A stretch of 62,985 nucleotides of DNA, counting the filler, from Klebsormidium nitens (Eukaryota > Plantae > Klebsormidiophyceae): the NCBI GenBank assembly GCA_000708835.1. It is 7 parts of 7 records of this genome, joined end to end, with 100 filler letters (N's around TTAATTAATTAA, not from the genome) between each part and the next. Parts side by side here need not be neighbours in the genome. Positions count along the whole stretch, not along the records: positions 52,053 to 60,486 come from DF238247.1; 6 more parts are not named here. One strand, 5' to 3'. A program made the translations under genes and the position numbers. Below the pieces are notes generated by a model, which was not told the DNA's origin, made no database searches, and worked only from the letters and a program-made list of their open reading frames with translations. This document shows positions 49,758 to 60,486 of this stretch, piece by piece (position 1 is the stretch's first letter; every line of letters starts with the position of its first letter).

Positions 49758-52260
49758 GAGGGGCCGGACTTGTCCCTCCANNNNNNNNNNNNNNNNNNNN
49801 NNNNNNNNNNNNNNNNNNNNNNNNTTAATTAATTAANNNNNNNNNNNNNNNNNNNNNNNNNNNNNNNNNNNNNNNNNNNNTTTGGAAGTTGAAGGTAGTG
49901 CAGGACTGCTTTACACCTTGGAGCAGCATATAGTGAAGTTCTCACGACAGTCAGATGTGTGCAGTAGCTTTCAAGCGTGCCTGCATTGAGCAGAGTGCTG
50001 GAGCTTTCTGGTTCTGGGGTGGACGCCGTGGTTCGCACCTCAGTCAGAGGGCTTTCATATATCAGAGCAACATTCTTTTGACATAAAACCTGTGCAATTG
50101 CATTTGCGCATGCCTGCAATCTGGCAGAGTGCTGGAGCTTTCTGGTGAATGGTGGATGCAGTGTTTCACACCACCCCTCCAGTATGCCGGTGCCTGTTTG
50201 GAGCATGTCCCTCTGCTTCTCGGGTTGTTTCACCTGTCAGGCCAGAATGAGATCACACCATCCCGGAGCTAGGTGGTTGGTATGGAAGTTGATCATCACA
50301 GCCTCTGATTGCAACAAGGCATTGCTCGACGAGTTTAGGTCAGTCTTGGTGTTCTCGCAACAAGTTGCATTTGAAGGTCTTGTCAGGGTGGAAAAGAGGA
50401 TGTTCAACGTCATCAGTTAAATTATGTTGCAAGCTTTATGCCAGCATTTTTCTATTGCTTGGGCTGGGGCAAGCTTGAATGCTTGCTCACCTGAGATTCA
50501 CCAAGAATTGCAACCACAATAATCATGACAAATGGACAGGAACACTCTGTCAGGATGGCTGCTGCATATCCAGGAAGTTCGTGTATATCTGAGTATGCCA
50601 TCGCTGTCAATCGTCAAGGCAGACACTCCAAAGTATCTGAGTTGCCTGAGACTCTCGTCTGTCATTCTTTAAACAGATCAGAAAGGAACCAGAGGCGCCC
50701 TGTGAGGATCTGGGGCCTAGACTGCTGCCTGCTGCTCCTCTTCAAAGATTATGATGGTCGGCAGACCCTGCCAAATCGCACAGCATGGGGAAGGCTGGCA
50801 GCCATTTTTGTGTGAACATGCATCCGCTAACCCCCTTCTCTCCTTGTCCCAGCTGCTGCAAGAGGGGGAGGGACCGAGGGCGCGGGCGCTTCAGGGGACG
50901 TTGAAATGCCGGATGTTGACTATGGGAGAGGTGAGTGTCCTTGCCTGGGGCGTCAGTCTTGGAAATGCAGGGCTGGTATGTGCGGTTGCTGAAGCGTCTG
51001 CTCAGCTATTCAGTTTTCAAGTGTACCTTCTTCTTCTGAGCATCAATATGCCCTTTCCCTCATCAGTCGGCAATTTTTCTGATCGCTTTCAAGGACGTTG
51101 ACTGTTTGTTTATGGGCTGGCAGATTTGCACAAGGTAAACTTGCGCCTGGCAGACTTGCCCGCCCAACATGAGCTGTATCATTGGATTGTATGCTGATCC
51201 TACTTTTGGTTTGGCTGTTTCAAAAGCATGCTCATAAGCCTTGGGGAAATAAGCTCTCGGGACCTGTTGCTGCTCACAATTTTGAAGCACCCTTTGCAGG
51301 ATATATGGGCTTTCTTAAGAGCCAGTTGCATTTGGAAGCCTCTGTAGGTATCTAATAGGTTTTGCACTGCAGACATCCATCTGAACCTGTAATGAGAGCA
51401 GGGACCTTGGTCCTCTCGAGCAACTCTTAATCCGCTGTCAGAACATTATTAAGCTTATTGAGCTTAATTGCCTGGCATGACCAAATTCTGCACCAGGTGG
51501 CGTCCAGAAATTTAAAGCAAAGGGATGTTAGGCAGTGCAGCTGCCGTTGACAAAAGCAGCATGGAGAGCGAGCTCCGGAACTCTGCCTGATCTACTCCCC
51601 TTTCTGGTGCAGCTGCTGGAACGAGGCAGACTGGTGCAGCTGCAGGCCCGTCCCAAGACACGATCATGCATGACACAACGCGGGGAGAATACAGACGTGA
51701 GTTGTGCTAAGCAAGTCTTCTGGCTCATTTGCAGTGTGGCTGTGCTATCTATTTGCCTCTCGCCTGTTGCCCTTGCGATTCAGCTGGTGACATGGGTGCC
51801 ACAAGTTTCTCTCTAGATATTTTCAGGGAGACTGCTCGCTTCAAAAAAGAATTGAAGGCACTGCGGAGATAAGAAGCCTTTTTTTCTCTTGACCCCTGCC
51901 AGCTCAGGTCTGCTTGCGTCCTTGGGCGACACATCAAACAGGGTCCACAAATNNNNNNNNNNNNNNNNNNNNNNNNNNNNNNNNNNNNNNNNNNNNTTAA
52001 TTAATTAANNNNNNNNNNNNNNNNNNNNNNNNNNNNNNNNNNNNNNNNNNNNGTCGTGAAATTTAGATTTTAGCGTCCGCTCGAAGACGATCGCCTCATC
52101 GCCGTCGCAAATGGTGGAGTACACCTTGCCGTTATCGCTGGTGATCTCCACCATTGGCATCTCCTTGGAGTGCGCCGTTGGATTGCGGGGCAACTCGGAG
52201 TCCGAATGCGTCCTCGATGGCGAGGCACCACCGGTACGAGCTCCGCCATGTTCTCCGGAT

Positions 52261-53037
52261 CCTGCTTGGCACAGCACCAAAGTTAGCTTAACATAACAGC
52301 TAGGCACAAGGTAAACCGGTAAATGTTTCCGTAATTCTGGTAGCATCCGCGTGCTAGCTAGTTTCAACAATTTAAGATTGATAAACTAGGAACCGGTATC
52401 AAGCCCAACATCCTTTTCTTCCTTCGGAATACAAAGTTTGGTCTTGCGAGATTTCTCGTTTTAATCAACCAACCAAAACTAGAATATACATTCAAAACAT
52501 ATCTCCATTTTAACCCTTAAAACAATAACGGACGAAGTCGAATCGTTCAGTTAATATAGCCAAGGACCTTTTGCGAAACAAATAATGGAGTAGAATGATT
52601 CAAGATGACAATGAGCAATACGGAGCTCTTTAAAACAGAAGCAAGAAGATCCTGCGGTACACAGCGCCAATAATAGCTTAACATAGTTGCTACGAATGAG
52701 GTAAAAAGGTAAATGTCTCCTTAATCCTGGTAGCATCCTCGTGCTTGTTAGTTTCAACAAGTGAATGCTGATAAAGTTGGAACTGGATTCAAGCCCATCA
52801 CCCTTTTCCTCCTTCGAATTGAACAGCTTGATAAAGCGAGATTTCTCATTTGAATCAACCAAAAAAAACTAGAATCTACATTCAAAACTTTTCTCCATTT
52901 CATCTCTTAAAGCAATAACGGACAAAGTCGAATCGTTCCTTATAGCCAAGGACCTTTTACGAAACAATTAAAGGAGTAAAAAGAATCAAGATGACAATGA
53001 GCAATACGGAGCCCTTTAAAACGGAAGCAAGAAGTGC
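52261..53037. repeat. AT-rich tandem duplication, about 390-bp unit x2
   Basis: CCTG..CACAGC.CCAA..AGCTTAACATA..CTGGTAGCATCC.CGTGCT..AAAACTAGAAT..GTCGAATCGTTC..CAAGATGACAATGAGCAATACGGAGC present twice. Confidence 0.85.
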
Positions 53038-53361
53038 ATTTTTGCTACCCGGAATCGTGATAACAAACTGAAACGAAAACAAATACCCCCTGAACAATAA
53101 ACAATAAGTTTTCGATTCAAAGTAGGTGTTAATGTGTTCATTCACCTGAACGCTGGTCGTGATCGGCCTGCTAAGATGCCTGCTTCCCTTCCCCGGAAAG
53201 CCGACTTCCAACTGTCAGTCCTTGCCGTGGCGGCTTGAACGCGGTGAGAGCTGCACACAATTCGGGCAAAGAATAGTTCAGTAACTACTAGTACGTGACT
53301 TACTGTAGGGGGCTCATCTTTACCATATGAATCTGTAGTTTGAAGCACCGTCTATCTCGTA

Positions 53362-56300
53362 GCATCGCATGTAGCATGCAATGCTTCGTCAAAAGTTCCG
53401 ATCCAAGCTGTCTGACAGCAACTTCGCAGGTGGTCACACTTAACAGCAGCTCTTTGAGCACAGTATCGTAGGCGACATGCGATGCTGCAACTTATCTGAT
53501 GCCATTGCGTGCTGACGTCAGCACACGTGCGGAAACTGCCGAGAAGCGCCCCGATCGTCGAACCTACAAACCTACGAATGAGCGAGATGGGCGACGAGGG
53601 TTTGTGACATTCGCGGAATCCCATGATCGCAGCAGCAAGCACGAGCACCCCTGCGTGGCTGCTCGAATGTGATTGGACGCGCGAACATCCTAAGATGCTC
53701 CGATTGGCTGGTAAGGATGTGCCTATCCTTTTGCGCCATTCTGATTGGTCATGTTCGCTTGAAACACGTGCATGCGCCAACTTGCATGTCAGTAAAATAA
53801 TGTAGTAATATATGGTTAGAAAATACGCAACCTGAAGATCATTAGTCAAGCACCCGACTGGATTTTGCGGCTGCCGGTGGAAACAACAAATGTATGAAAA
53901 TCATATAAGCCGCGAGGCAGCCGTAAAGTGTGACGCTAAAGCAGTCACAGATAACAAATTGATCTCGCAAAAGTTGCTCCACTTTAGCGTCACATTTAGC
54001 GTCCTGCTTCAAAGGTTTCAGAAAAGCGTCATTTGTCCTTTTTCCCAACTTTTGAAGTTGGTTTTCAGGGCGCCGCCGGAGAATACGGCCGTTTCAGCAA
54101 AGTATCGTTTATGAAAACGATGCTTTCTTGTGGGCTGCTAGCAAATGCCTAGATGCGAGCTCAGGTCCGCTTTCAGTGCATCAGAGATAAAAGCATCGCA
54201 CCCGGCATGTGACGCCTTTGTCTGAAACCTCTGTGCAGAGCTGGCTTCGAAGGTTAGTGCCGCATCCTGCCTAGGACGATTCTCTCTTGCTGTCGTTCGT
54301 GAGCTTCTTAAAGTTTCTTAGAACGTCGCATGCAGGGTGCGACGCTCGCAGGCGATCGTTCATCTGGGGTTTAGCTAAGCTAGTGTCACCTGCTGCCTGC
54401 GACGCCTGTGGTTGTATGGCCTCTCGGAGTGGGATTGTAATTAGGATCACTCGCTCAAAAAAAACAGATCAGGACTCTCAGAATACCACAGCAGAGAGTG
54501 AGACAGTCTCGACACGTACTTCACCGTTTGGAAAGAACCTGCAAAGCGGCCCAGGGCCAAGAAGTTCTATCCCGGATAGTGTTTTGAATAACCGAAGCGA
54601 ACCGAGTATGGGGCGTGCAAAGAAGCCAAAGCCGGAAGCTGCACAGGTTGACCCTGAGGACTTGCCGCTAGGAACGAGGAAGCCCAGGTCCAAGCTGAAG
54701 CGGGGGGATAGAGGCAACGAAGAAGCGGAATCCGCTCATGCGGAAGGCGGGAAAGGAGTCTCCGAAGTTAACCCTGCTGCAATGCCCTCGGTGGTGGCAG
54801 AAGCGGAGTCAAATTTCGAGGGTGGGGTAGGCGTGCAACGAGCGGAGGCGGCTGCCGCAGAAGGCGGTTCTGGTGACCGCGCGGCCGCCGGAATCGCCGC
54901 CGAAGATCAGCCGGTTGGCCTGGAGGTTTCGGAAAGTGGAGCGGGCGCGCGGCTCGAAGTCGCGAGCGCGCCGACGGAAGTGGGCCCGGGCGGGGCGGCC
55001 GGTGACGTGTCGGGGGTAAACCTTGGAAAAACCGCGACTACAAACCCGCCCGCGGTCAGTGAGCTGTCGGCCTTAGGTGCGGTAAGGGGCGCGACCCAAA
55101 AGGCGCACGACCCTGAGTTAGGGAAGAAGGAAGACAAGGGGGAGGCGGAGGGAACCGGAGAAGGGGTAACCAAGGAACCGCCTGAGGTTCAGGTGGAGGG
55201 GCTGCAAGGGCGGTCAAGCCTTGAAGGGGTTGAGTCCTCCGCGGTTGATATTGAGAAGAAGAGAAGCGAGGTTAGCGCAGCGCAAGAGAAGAAGAGTGGG
55301 GAAGTTTCAGCAGAGATGAGCGAAGAGGAGGGTAAGGGTACCGAGCATGACAAGGCACCACCCAAAGAGACACCTCTTGCTAAGCCCACAGAGAAGGGGG
55401 GTGCAAAGAATACGAGAAAGTCAGGGAAGGGGGATGCAACAGGCACGTCAGAGCCGGGTGATGGAGGGGAGAAGGAGGCACCAACTGGGGCGGTGGGCTC
55501 GGGAGATTTCTTCGGACCGTCAGGGAAGATCAACCCTGAGAGGATGGAGTACATCAGGAAGCTGGCTCAGGAATTCAAGGAGGGGAAGGGGGGTGAAGAG
55601 GCATAGGGCCTGAATGCTGAAGAGGTAGGTTTGATAGATTGGATAATATTTTGGAAGACTTGTTGGGTTGCTTGATTGTAGAAGCGTCGCAAACTGCATG
55701 AGATGCTGTGGACTTACTGTGGTTCTCTACCTCATCTGATACTTGAGATGGGGACTGCAAAGGGGTACAAAGGGATGGTCTTTGTCTGAACGTCGCATGC
55801 TGCCTGTGACGCTCTTGATTGTTGAGGTTGTCATGTCCTTCTTATACTTTCAGATATAGTCTGCATACTGGCTGTTTGTAGTCGGAAGCACCGCATGCTG
55901 CCTGTGATACCATTGGCCACTGAGGTTCTCGTGTTTTTGTGATATTTTGGAAAAGGGTTTCCTTAGGGTTATTGCCAGCATGAACTGTGCGTTCGTCAGT
56001 GCTTTAAAATTCATCATTCTTCTTTTCTGTGTTCTTCCAGCGTCGCATCCTGCCTGTGATACTAGGATACATTGTTGGCATGACTTGCTGGCGTTTGTAA
56101 GGAATCTGTAGCTGTTCACGCCCGTTTCAGAGCTAGCTGGTTTAAAAACAGACACCTGGTACAGAACAGGTTGCTGGCAGTCCATGTCCAGTGTCATGTT
56201 CATCAAGCCTCTGAGTTATCCTTTGCTAGTCCTCTTGCGAGAGTATCGCCTCCAGCATGTGATGCTATATTTCTTTTCCCGAAATATTTACTGTTCTGAT

Positions 56301-57929
56301 TGGTTCAATGCGCGCACCTAACTGCGTTTCTTAACCCTTGCAGTTCCGCAAGCTCACCGACCTGGTAAGCGTGCATCAGGTCGCGCGCCGTATGACGTCT
56401 CTGATGGAAGCAACCGCCGCCTATCCAAAGGACTGGGATGGGAGGGGCAAGCTGCACTTCGACATCCCGATGTGCATGCTGCAAAACGGGAACGACGCAG
56501 AGAAGTTCGGTGTAGTGCACCCTGAGGTAGACGACAACGGACGGCCCAAAACGGTGCGGATCACGGAAAGGATGACAACGCCTGCGCAGGTCAGGACGGG
56601 GGAGAGGATCTGGGTAGAGGGCCACATCAAGGAGAGGGGGGACGTGACGGCAGTGATCAGACCGTTTGGGAAAGACGTTCTGATCACCGAAGAAGACAAG
56701 GCGGCGATGTCTGTCGAAGACCGGGCGGATCTAGAGAAGTTTGAGAAGACGGTCGAGCAGATGTGCAAGAGCGAGGACGCGGGAGTGAAGGTGAAGGGGG
56801 AGTGTCTGAAGGCGAACGTGGTGGGGAGGTGGCTGTTCCTTGTGGATGGGAACTCGAGGTGAGCACACTTGTGAAATAATGTAGTGGTCAACGCCCGATA
56901 TGCTAAAGTTGCATGTCCTTTGTTTTTTGACTGCATTCACTGATTACATTGCCTCAAATTATAGAAAGGAAGCTTAACAAGGTCCGAGGTAAAGTTAGCC
57001 AGGTATTCTATCCTGAATGTTGTTGGTTGCGAATCTTTCTTTGCCATACGTTCTGACAATAAAACCAGCGACTCGGCAGGGCTGACTCCGTTGCTTCGTA
57101 CCAAAGGTCATCGGGCTGTACGCTGTGCTAAATATGCTACACAATTAGTCGTTGATTTGATTCCATTACTCTTCAGGCTGGAGGGATACAAACGGGGTCG
57201 TACCAAGGACAAGGCTGACACGGGAAAGACTACTAAGGACATCTTCTTCCAAACGTTCTTGGTCGGCCTCACCGCTGACAACATGGACGACGTCGCGGCT
57301 ATGTCCCGGCAGATAAACGACAACAACATCGAGTTCAACTCCAAGAAGACTGTGGCGCAGGAGGTTTATGCCTGCTACCAAATGAACGACAAGTCCGAAG
57401 AAGAGATGGAGAAGATCGTCAGCGGAGCGGTGAGTTTACTGAGAGTGTCGCAGGCAGAATGCGATGCTTTGCTTCTTCAACCTTTGGAATTTTATCTCAG
57501 AGAGTGTCGCAGGCAGGATGCGATGCTTTGCTTCTTCAACCTTTGGAATTCTATCTCAGAGAGTGTCGCAGGCAGGATGCGATGTTTTGCTTCTTCAACC
57601 TTTCGAATTTTTATATCAGAGAGTGTCGCAGGCAGGATGCAATGCTGTGCTTCTTCAACCTTTGGGACTTCAATAACGTTAGGAGATAGATAGCCTGTAG
57701 ACGGTTGCACAATTTAAAGCATATCCCCTGTCTCCTGGAGTGTCGCAGGCAGGCTGTGACGCCTAGTTGTTTTCCTCCTCTGAGTTCCCATAGGGTAAAC
57801 AGAGAGAAGCCTTGTAGGACGGATGTTCTGTATGCGCGGAATTGTTCTTATTTTTGGGTCTGTCTCTTTGTCGTGGTTTATTTTCCTGTACTTGATTGCT
57901 GTCAAGGTGTCACATGCTGAGTGTGATAC
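53362..57929. promoter_or_regulatory. Dispersed spaced palindrome G(C/T)(G/A)TC(G/A)CA-N7-TG(C/T)GA(C/T)(G/A)C, at least 15 copies; putative protein-binding sites
   Basis: Copies start at 53362, 54193, 54323, 54383, 55684, 55790, 55888, 56040, 56243, 57445 (plus 3 tandem copies to about 57650), 57740 and 57907. The spacer is 7 nt in each. The regulatory role is inferred. Confidence 0.6.
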
Positions 57930-58830
57930 ATATTTGCCGATGCAGATGCTCACGTTGTACGGCGAACACACTGGGAAGTGGACTAAGCTGCGAGCAGAGC
58001 TCAAAGAGCAAGGGGTGAACTACCCCGGGCTTGTGTTTGCTGTGGGTCTGAAGCCCAGCCTCGGGTGGGGACCCAACTCGCTTTTTATTTTTCTTGCTGT
58101 TACTTTCCGTGGAGTTCCGCGGAGTTCGGGATCCCGGTGCCAGTGAATAATGAGCTCGCAAGTATAATTCTTTTGTCTACTCTTGTTTGATGTACGGAGT
58201 GTCATGGAAAAACTGTTGTGATTTGTCCTTCTGAAGGAAAGAATGTTATGTCAAATCTGACGTGTAGACGCGATTGAAAAGACTTCTTACTATTTCTTGG
58301 TGCTCTACAGCCTGCTGCTCATGGACAAGTCGACCTTGAGCCTCCCTGCGGAGAAAGTCGGCGAACTCGGGTCCGCCCGGTCTGTGTGGGCGTTGAAGAG
58401 GGTGCACTGCGCCAACCTGTCAAAGGAGAAGCGCGGGTTCTGGGAGCCCATCTGGCAAAGATGGGTCATGCTTGAGCAGCCTGAGCTCGTTGTGCCAGAC
58501 ATCGACGTCCCGGGACGTTCTGTCGATGAAGCACCTGCCCGTCTCCTGGGATGCAGTCGTCGTGCTCCTTTGCGAACTCGACGGAGAGTCCTTCAAGCAC
58601 ATCATCGGCCTGGACCGCTCCCGATCCAATCTGAAGTCCTGGGTGAAGTGGATGGGTATTTTGTTCGCGGTGTGCGAGGCTGTCGTCACCCAGCTCATGG
58701 ACTTCGGGTTCTACGAGAAGCCGAAGACGAGAAAGAGGGGGACTCGCCTGCATTGGTTAAGGACTACCTCCACTTCGCCGGAGCGTACGATCCGTACTGT
58801 CACGCCAGATTGGCTCCTTGCCATAGCGTG
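54608..58830 (+). pseudogene. Spliced ParB/Srx-like domain protein with a long acidic low-complexity N-terminus; decayed and 3'-truncated
   Basis: Exons 54608-55624 (in-frame TAG at 55604), 56344-56858, 57177-57429, 57946 to about 58014, and about 58311-58830 (two frameshifts). ParB-like motifs: PAQVR..HIKERGDVTAVIRP (cf. PxQPR..SIKExG..P..VRP) and FLVDGNSR|LEGY (cf. IIDGxxR), then SRQINDNN. Confidence 0.6.
57440..57670 (+). repeat. About 59-60 bp tandem repeat x4 directly after a donor site, each unit with the N7 palindrome
   Basis: GAGAGTGTCGCAGGCAG(A/G)ATGC(G/A)ATG.T.TGCTTCTTCAACCTTT x4. Confidence 0.9.
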
Positions 58831-59051
58831 TCCTGAGCGTGCGCGCGCGCGCATCGCGCCGCCGCCGCCACAGGCTCATAGCCTATGCACGGCCATAGCC
58901 TATTCATGTTGGACCCTTCGTTTATTGAGGTCCATGCATTTTGGCCCCTTTGCATTATTCGCATTTAATGCATGGCGCAACCCTTGACCCCCTCAAGGGG
59001 GATACCTTTCGACTTCGCATGCTCCTTCGACNNNNNNNNNNNNNNNNNNNN

Positions 59052-60486
59052 ACGGAGCAGCCCCCTGCAACGCCGAAGTACACAAGTCAGAGGCCAGGGT
59101 ACGTACACCCCCCTGAACTTATACACCTGGGTTGCATGGCGGTGATTTTGCGAGCATTGTGTGAATTTGAAGTGGTTTCGAGTCTTGCTTTGACTTCTTG
59201 ACTCACGGATTTGGAGTATATTGGGTGGGTTTTGGGTTTGACTCATCAGCTGGATTTGGAGTGGACTAGCTAGTGTACACTGTGAGTCTTGGATAGGAGC
59301 CAAAGCTATAGCCTAGTATAGGTTCGGCCTTGCGGCCGAGAACGAAAGTGCGGGCCCAGGGCCCAAGGGTGCAGAGAAGGGGCAGCCCTTTCGGGACTGC
59401 CCCTGTGTGGCATTGCCTTGTCTAGCTTGGTAGACCTCTGTCCAGCATTGAATTGCCTTGCATTGTTAAGCATTGTGAAGCACTGCCTAGCATTGTTGCG
59501 CATTGGCTGCCTCTGCTTTGAAATTCGTATCTGGCATTATCGATAGCAAAGGCTGAGGGTGTTGCGTTGTAAGTAGACCGCATTCAGGCCGGGTGTCGTG
59601 CATCAGGATTTTTAGAGCTGCTCAGCATAGAGCGCAGCAGAGTTTCGTTGCTGGCCGGCTGAGTTGGGTTGCGCCACAGAAGGCGCAGCTGGTTTTTGCT
59701 GCTGGCAGCTTGGTTTGAGTTGCGCCACCGCGGGCGCAGCTGGTTGACGTTGTTGGCAGCCTGATTTAGGTGGCGCCACAGGCGGCGCAGCTGTTTTGCT
59801 TGCTTACAGGCTGATTTGGAGTTGCGTCGCAGAGGGCGCAGCTGAAGTGTGTCGCTGACAGGTTGTTTTAGAGTNNNNNNNNNNNNNNNNNNNNCATCAA
59901 GCACGGACGACCGCCCGGGCGCCACGTCCCGGTCCCACGGAGCAGCCCCCTGCAACGCCGAAGTACACAAGTCAGAGGCCAGGGTACGTACACCCCCCTG
60001 AACTTATACACCTGGGTTGCATGGCGGTGATTTTGCGAGCATTGTGTGAATTTGAAGTGGTTTCGAGTCTTGCTTTGACTTCTTGACTCACGGATTTGGA
60101 GTATATTGGGTGGGTTTTGGGTTTGACTCATCAGCTGGATTTGGAGTGGACTAGCTAGTGTACACTGTGAGTCTTGGATAGGAGCCAAAGCTATAGCCTA
60201 GTATAGGTTCGGCCTTGCGGCCGAGAAGGAAAGTGCGGGCCCAGGGCCCAAGGGTGCAGAGAAGGGGCAGCCCTTTCGGGACTGCCCCTGTGTGGCATTG
60301 CATTGTCTAGCTTGGTAGAGCTCTGTCCAGCATTGAATTGCCTTGCATTGTTAAGCATTGTGAAGCACTGCCTAGCATTGTTGCGCATTGGCTGCCTCTG
60401 CTTTGAAATTCGTATCTGGCATTATCGATAGCAAAGGCTGAGGGTGTTGCGCTGTAAGTAGACCGCATTCAGGCCGGGTGTCGTGC
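59052..60486. repeat. 885-bp-period duplication (550 bp aligned) with an internal ~54-bp minisatellite at 59620-59870
   Basis: 59052-59601 matches 59937-60486; I saw 4 substitutions. Both copies are bounded by gaps. Confidence 0.9.

Follow-up and report, generated by a model that had tools for sequence, protein, structure and literature searches.

Among the systems described to date, those closest to the locus reported here are the ParB-parS pairs of bacteria and plasmids (ParB/Spo0J, KorB-OB and Noc-NBS), in which ParB nucleates on parS sites beside its own gene. In algae, proteins combining a ParB-like domain with a DNA methyltransferase have been recorded as accessory proteins of giant transposons, including Sola1-1_Ec32 of Ectocarpus and elements of green and red algae, and it has been suggested that the ParB-like proteins bind and mark their own element, with no cognate site reported (PMC12477816). 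Furthermore, selfish short palindromes of ~50 nt with a TTTA/TAAA loop are found in the intergenic and intronic DNA of Volvox carteri organelles (PMC2670323). In this work, we analyzed a window of 62,985 nt of Klebsormidium nitens (assembly GCA_000708835.1), i.e., the whole stretch of DNA under study, and within it the piece at positions 52053-60486 (DF238247.1), a eukaryotic scaffold fragment of 8.4 kb that has ~50% G+C and is interrupted by two N gaps; on its + strand it carries a single gene of several exons separated by GT-AG introns. An array of 25-bp palindromes surrounds this gene and is confined to its non-coding DNA, and the gene belongs, as judged from its sequence, to a very small intron-bearing family whose product probably adopts a ParB/Srx-like fold.

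As in the ParB-parS systems, a repeated palindrome lies near and inside a gene whose product displays ParB-like motif spacing followed by a helical region, and the structural neighbours of P0020, the only full-length named member of the family, are clusters combining ParB_N with HTH_ParB. In contrast to those systems, the locus is eukaryotic and spliced, its product gives no match to the profile PF02195 and lacks the GERRxR and ENLQR boxes, a ~55-residue insertion splits the core, the site measures 25 bp instead of 13-16 bp, and the copies are CpG-decayed; besides, Pfam revealed no ATPase in any open reading frame (ORF) of the piece, so that a ParA partner is missing as well. What the locus does have in common with them is the repeated palindromic site near the gene. 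With the ParB proteins of algal giant transposons the locus would share a prokaryote-like ParB domain, and the gene is suspected to be element-borne; however, no methyltransferase family was detected in exons 1-5 or in the 939-residue P0020, and the piece contains neither a transposase nor element ends. The Volvox carteri palindromes are likewise confined to non-coding DNA and occur in both orientations and as degenerate copies, whereas here the gene is of nuclear type with GT-AG introns, the unit is 25 nt long with a 7-nt centre, and the copies cluster at one locus within the piece. Miniature inverted-repeat transposable elements (MITEs) and foldback elements also disperse a palindromic unit in non-coding DNA, but the unit described here is too short (25-29 nt), with no target-site duplication and no internal sequence. 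ParB-like proteins in algal transposons (PMC12477816) and selfish palindromes in algal organelles (PMC2670323) were already known; what is new is a spliced, probably ParB-like family invisible to Pfam, paired with a dense, locus-restricted palindrome array as a candidate system.

The palindrome array

The motif GYRTCRCA-N7-TGYGAYRC, a 23-mer, occurs in six exact copies and in 16 copies when one mismatch is allowed, and two or three mismatches add none; in 100 dinucleotide-preserving shuffles, 0.0 copies were obtained at ≤1 mismatch and 0.76 at ≤3. All 16 copies lie within 53362-57929, five of them upstream (≤1.25 kb before the start codon) and the others in intron 1 (five) and intron 3 (six), and none was found in the exons, in intron 2, before 53362 or after 57929 along the whole piece. 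These results agree with the initial annotation of this DNA, which had proposed at least 15 copies restricted to non-coding DNA (four or more upstream, five in intron 1 and six in intron 3) and had placed the best one at 54324-54344. The array is thereby confined to 2.5 kb of the gene's non-coding DNA, with 0 copies in the remaining 3.4 kb of non-coding DNA of the piece; given the latter's total non-coding DNA, the probability that all copies fall in the motif-bearing parts amounts to 1e-6 when all 16 copies are counted and to 3e-5 when only the 12 independent units are. Exact half-sites number 25 against 2.0 expected, 22 of them inside full palindromes. The core pair TCRCA/TGYGA is found at the 7-base spacer only (9 cases, and 0 at spacers of 0-6 or 8-14), which upholds the fixed spacer length claimed beforehand. 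Within intron 3 (57430-57945), the first palindrome begins 15 nt past the donor and the last ends 16 nt short of the acceptor, an end symmetry that is not seen in intron 1 and is probably due to chance.

A position matrix of the 16 copies showed that the spacer is conserved as well, with C at position 11 and G at position 13 in 15 of 16 copies each, and G at position 10 in 12 of 16. The conserved centre GCWG, contrary to the free variation of the spacer that had been assumed, forms part of a sequence, K-G-C-W-G-S-M, which is itself palindromic, and the A preceding and the T following the arms are also conserved. Since the spacer centre is conserved, the unit corresponds to a single contiguous 25-bp palindrome, A-GYRTCGCA-KGCWGSM-TGYGAYRC-T, and not to two half-sites joined by a free linker; the occurrence of both orientations, stated earlier for the site as a whole, applies to the asymmetric spacer only, with eight copies each way. 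The Y/R-degenerate arm positions coincide with the CpG positions of GCGTCGCA/TGCGACGC, and 39 of the 47 arm deviations tallied from the matrix are CpG transitions (CpG to TpG or CpA). The observed/expected CpG ratio is 0.58-0.64 in introns 1 and 3, where TpG and CpA are in excess, compared with 0.88-1.08 in exons 1-3 and 1.04 upstream; from the CpG-depleted introns together with the CpG-transition deviations, the copies appear to decay as methylated DNA does.

Regarding the surroundings of the copies, the flanks are no more alike than expected by chance in 113 of 120 copy pairs, while the motifs themselves average 18.5/25 identity. Shared flanks are restricted to the four tandem copies and to the pair at 55790/55888, leaving 12 unrelated flank contexts, and no recurrent target-site duplication was found at any boundary (half-length 11-18, duplication length 2-8). 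Unrelated flanks in 12 contexts and the lack of target-site duplications define the 25-mer as a discrete unit, which was either conserved amid diverging surroundings or placed without flanks. A MITE and a cut-and-paste insertion of the 25-mer were both rejected on account of the missing target-site duplications. The sense-strand hairpin is the more stable one in 6 of 13 independent copies (p=0.49); this absence of strand bias fits duplex recognition better than an RNA element, and the idea of a sense-strand role for G·U pairs was discarded, given that sense and antisense hairpins are equally stable.

Similar arrangements were sought in metagenomes by scanning for two motif copies 30-60 nt apart. 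The 109 loci recovered were mostly hairpin repeats with different spacers, many of them on GC-rich contigs; none encodes a relative of the family and few approach the extended consensus, and we judged them unrelated to the array. Four metagenome contigs (L089, L097, L122 and L159; 64-65% G+C) carry a repeated hairpin, AACGTCGCACGCAAGGTGCGACGCT, with the arms of the best copy around a different centre; it has the look of a bacterial repetitive extragenic palindromic (REP) repeat, and the resemblance is most likely a coincidence.

The gene and its family

The gene model comprises five or more exons (Table 1). Exon 1 contains an in-frame TAG at 55604-55606, six codons ahead of the best donor, AG/GTAGGT at 55624/55625 (the slash marks the splice junction), which is the strongest one available and is in frame with exon 2; the TAG may represent a lesion, the use of another donor or an assembly error. 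Lysine/arginine-rich stretches in exon 1 suggest nuclear localisation. The core encoded by exon 2 consists of TERMTTPAQVR, GHIKERGDVTAVIRPFG, the ~55-residue helical insertion and WLFLVDGNS-R. In the last exon the reading frame shifts near 58500 and again near 58735, and these changes may reflect decay or assembly indels. Exons were searched one by one, and Pfam assigned no significant family to any of them nor to any other ORF of the piece; a DUF5726 match on exon 3 (E=0.038) was dismissed as chance, as it is not common to the two exon-3 homologues.

Searches with exon 2 retrieved eight fragments with 62-95% identity, and an exhaustive HMMER search recovered only 10 proteins among 1.84 billion. 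Just one member is both named and full-length, P0020 ('hypothetical protein KFL_011670020, partial [Klebsormidium nitens]'), with 939 residues and no Pfam family. Nearly all family fragments run from the exon 2 acceptor to FLVDGNSR at the edge of exon 2, and they correspond to ORF calls on unannotated eukaryotic contigs with common intron positions. Both the phase 2 intron after DGNS-R and the acceptor before exon 2 are kept at 30-95% identity (P0001-P0019) and recur in every family fragment, so that the spliced gene proposed in the initial annotation is real. Three fragments (P0014, P0016 and P0018) carry frameshifts, which is what one would expect of a family present in several copies and decayed in part. 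A word search with exon 3 and its read-through yielded two exon-3 fragments only (P0021 and P0022), and neither hhalign nor BLASTP of exons 3-5 against P0020 gave a significant match beyond exon 2. Scans of viral and metagenome contigs with the family alignment returned no match, nor did tblastn of P0020 against phages. These sequence data place the gene in a very small, intron-bearing family.

Table 1. Positions of the palindromes, related repeats and exons of the locus, counted along the window.
Feature	Position	Part of locus	Strand	Details
Palindrome copy 1	53362..53384	upstream		1 mismatch; GCATCGCA-TGTAGCA-TGCAATGC
Palindrome copy 2	53463..53485	upstream		1 mismatch; inverted pair with copy 1
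Wide inverted repeat	53926..53997			two orphan half-sites (TGTGACGC ... GCGTCACA), order reversed
Palindrome copy 3	54193..54215	upstream		exact
Palindrome copy 4	54323..54345	upstream		best arms: ACGTCGCA-TGCAGGG-TGCGACGC
Palindrome copy 5	54383..54405	upstream, ~200 nt from ATG		1 mismatch
Exon 1	54608..55624		+	ATG at 54608; low-complexity G/E/A/K-rich N-terminal region; no Pfam family
Palindrome copy 6	55684..55706	intron 1		
Palindrome copy 7	55790..55812	intron 1		flank in common with copy 8
Palindrome copy 8	55888..55910	intron 1		
Palindrome copy 9	56040..56062	intron 1		exact
Palindrome copy 10	56243..56265	intron 1		
Exon 2	56344..56858		+	conserved family core; phase 2 end at AG/GTGAGC
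Exon 3	57177..57429		+	(R)LEGYKRG...INDNNIEFNS...EEEMEKIVSGA; 64-69% identity to P0021 and P0022
59-bp tandem array, 3.8 units	57441..57665	intron 3		one palindrome per unit; starts 57445, 57504, 57563, 57623
Palindrome copy 15	57740..57762	intron 3		exact
Palindrome copy 16	57907..57929	intron 3		exact; ends 16 nt ahead of exon 4
Exon 4	57946..~58064		+	3' end uncertain; putative phase-compatible donor GG/GTGGGG
Last exon(s)	~58311..58836		+	two overlapping long ORFs

Resemblance to ParB and readings of the array

The residues quoted in the initial annotation (PAQVR, HIKERG, VIRP and FLVDGNSR/LEGYK) are all present in the protein. Aligned by eye, TTPAQVR, GHIKERGDVTAVIRPF, FLVDGNSR-LEGYK and INDNNIEFNS...SEEEMEKIV correspond in position to ParB boxes I-III and the first part of the helix-turn-helix (HTH), and the spacing of PxQxR, G..ϕϕϕ and ϕϕϕDGxxR fits the ParB core; one arginine, that of DGNSR/DGNTR, is invariant across the family. 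Furthermore, the ESM Atlas neighbour list for residues 170-416 of P0020 shows ParB_N in six of the ten structural clusters listed, five of which also include HTH_ParB (four as the majority annotation), and a seventh cluster corresponded to DndB; the template modelling (TM) scores of these neighbours were 0.42-0.55 on a low-confidence model of P0020, and one ParB_N cluster reached 0.92 by features. Residues 250-300 of P0020, equivalent to residues ~115-165 of exon 2 in the window, are modelled by AlphaFold2 as a ~55-residue helical hairpin with a predicted local distance difference test (pLDDT) score above 90, inserted between two core strands; we know of no comparable insertion at that point in canonical ParB. 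From the ESM Atlas neighbours and the motif spacing, a ParB/Srx-like fold appears probable. The boxes for cytidine triphosphate (CTP) binding, GERRxR(A) and ENLQR, are missing, the corresponding sequence being, by eye, FLVDGNSR/LEGYK and INDNNIEFNS, and a CTP-dependent clamp seems unlikely for a protein of this sequence.

Our tentative reading of the array is that of a cluster of duplex DNA sites recognised by a dimeric protein, the product of the locus itself being the leading, unproven candidate. Such a protein would combine a ParB/Srx-type N-terminal domain, carrying the ~55-residue helical insertion, with a helical DNA-binding region, and each monomer would read one TCGCA-containing arm, the arm centres lying ~12 bp apart; since the dimer sites are identical and present in many copies, many dimers could load on this single locus. 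The ParB-like product would be the most economical candidate binder, and the outcome might be self-marking or autoregulation, comparable to ParB nucleating on parS beside its gene, here without the CTPase signature. Quite improbable, in our judgement, is the fuller proposal of a eukaryotic ParB-parS-like pair, which would be the first candidate of its kind and in which a ParB/Srx protein devoid of CTPase boxes, encoded by an intron-bearing selfish gene or mobile element of a streptophyte alga, would nucleate on the palindromes of its own promoter and introns and thereby mark or regulate the locus.

Several observations weigh against recognition of the array by a ParB-like product. At E values up to 1-10, neither Pfam, PHROGs nor NCBIfam gave ParB, Srx or DndB for the exons, the family fragments or P0020; sequence and profile searches of the PDB were blank, and hhalign against phage P1 ParB returned a probability of 0.3. 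The effective number of sequences (Neff) of the family is 1.4, and P1 ParB has viral relatives that are all ~100% identical and plasmid relatives that are all type Ia. The AlphaFold2 model of exon 2 has a pLDDT of 44, and that of P0020, built with an alignment, 46, with only residues 250-300 confident; Foldseek searches of these models (pdb and VIA) produced generic helical matches only, and as the models are unusable at such pLDDT values, fold searches on them are meaningless. What stands of the ParB-likeness proposed initially, and of its check by structure prediction, is the motif spacing and the ParB_N, HTH_ParB and DndB neighbours of the ESM Atlas model, and what failed to appear is a profile or PDB match. 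As for the palindromes, the copies look as though they were decaying and not maintained, their arm deviations being mostly CpG transitions; the inner right-arm CpG is altered in 9 of 16 copies (TGTGA in seven), and the conserved spacer centre points to a single master sequence as the ancestor of all copies. In view of the TAG at 55604 and the frame changes of the last exon, the gene copy, too, may be broken and is possibly decaying.

The homologues weigh on the same side. We asked whether intron read-through of homologous ORFs could encode the motif core, the read-through of the window, which gives three copies, serving as control; the comparison covered ~100 nt of intron 3 for P0021 and P0022, and the intron-1 sequence by which some exon-2 ORFs extend upstream. 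No intron-derived stretch of the homologues was compatible with the core, at places where the window has copies, and the only three compatible peptides fall in conserved coding sequence (P0005, P0015 and P0020). This result speaks, weakly, against a positionally conserved array. Finally, a minisatellite downstream of the gene carries a different palindrome, and palindrome-bearing repeats may be a habit of this genome.

The main rival reading, possible though doubtful in our judgement, is a short palindromic repeat without a dedicated binder, selfish or structure-prone, lying beside a ParB-like gene by coincidence in a repeat-rich region. Such a repeat would spread through gene conversion, slippage, or copying that involves hairpins or cruciforms, persist where harmless, in intronic and intergenic DNA, and then undergo CpG deamination. 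The shared spacer centre, indicating a single master, and variation consisting mostly of CpG decay are in line with it, as are the placement of part of the array in a 59-bp minisatellite, one pair of copies explained by a ~100-bp local duplication, the second, unrelated palindrome in a 51-bp minisatellite downstream, the 390-bp and 885-bp repeats flanking the gene, and the visible homologous intron stretches that lack the motif. However, segmental duplication would not easily leave 12 units with unrelated flanks, target-site duplications are lacking, and no copies occur in the piece's remaining 3.4 kb of non-coding DNA; we know of no mechanism by which a unit of 25 nt is dispersed through a nuclear genome. 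The intergenic and intronic short palindromes of Volvox organelle genomes offer a precedent, but the known selfish palindromes are organellar, ~50 nt long and with loops of 3-5 nt, and in the Volvox nucleus they are described as inert transfers (PMC2670323).

It is also conceivable, if unlikely, that the copies are sites for another factor. A host transcription factor might bind them as a clustered enhancer or silencer of the gene, or they might serve a transposase or some different protein belonging to a larger mobile element with ends outside the piece. The evidence for discrete duplex sites applies equally to such a factor, and the five copies within 1.25 kb upstream of the start codon lie where regulators bind. 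The 25-mer matches no plant or algal cis-element that we know of; resemblances to the auxin response element (AuxRE) and the RY element do not fit most palindrome copies. An element would accord with the ParB-like accessory genes on record in giant algal transposons (PMC12477816), and the frameshifted fragments, together with a Klebsormidium copy on a small scaffold, hint at a multi-copy, element-like family. Nevertheless, subterminal transposase sites are normally found at element ends and not across 4.5 kb of introns, no transposase or other domain was found in any ORF of the piece, and terminal inverted repeats were likewise not found in the 8.4 kb, which may be too short to contain a transposase or element ends; the mobile-element status put forward in the initial annotation consequently gains nothing from the piece, where target-site duplications are lacking as well. 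Lastly, a role of the copies as RNA hairpins in the pre-mRNA or in small-RNA precursors is highly improbable, because although every copy can fold (-3 to -15 kcal/mol) and 11 of the 16 are intronic within a single transcript, hairpins of the sense and the antisense strand do not differ in stability, five copies precede the coding region, and Rfam gave nothing above threshold, its match to mir-1497, at 24 bits where the gathering score is 80, being due to chance.

Surrounding repeats and significance of the locus

The gene is flanked by unrelated repeats, i.e., a direct repeat of ~390 bp upstream, and a duplicated 885-bp unit and minisatellites downstream. The upstream repeat (52258-53034) is AT-rich, with 80-91% identity, and directly precedes the part that carries the motif; near 53050, G+C increases from 0.39 to 0.49, possibly marking a boundary. 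At the left edge (52053-52163, - strand), the start of an unrelated ORF or exon (MPMVEITSDNGKVYSTICDGDEAIVFERTLKSKFHD...) without Pfam family runs off the piece. Downstream, a 51-bp tandem repeat of about 4-5 units occupies 59617-59869; three units carry the palindrome TGCGCC-N6-GGCGCA, and in the unit at 59823 a single GCGTCGCA half-site of the main motif stands alone. The 885-bp unit is seen in the 100% identity of 59052-59351 and 59937-60236 (more widely, ~59052-59560 and 59937-60445) across an N gap, and is either a tandem satellite or a scaffolding artefact; short repeats of GCATTG type, mostly at 10-bp spacing, lie at 59410-59525 and 60295-60410.

If the palindromes are not bound by the product of the gene, the locus would still represent a short palindromic repeat of the nucleus whose spread involves neither flanks nor target-site duplications, itself poorly explained. 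If they are, the ParB-parS logic would extend to a spliced eukaryotic gene, providing a handle on element self-recognition. The locus offers a candidate pair, constituted by a palindrome of defined sequence, 25 bp in length, and a protein family whose small size puts cloning within reach.

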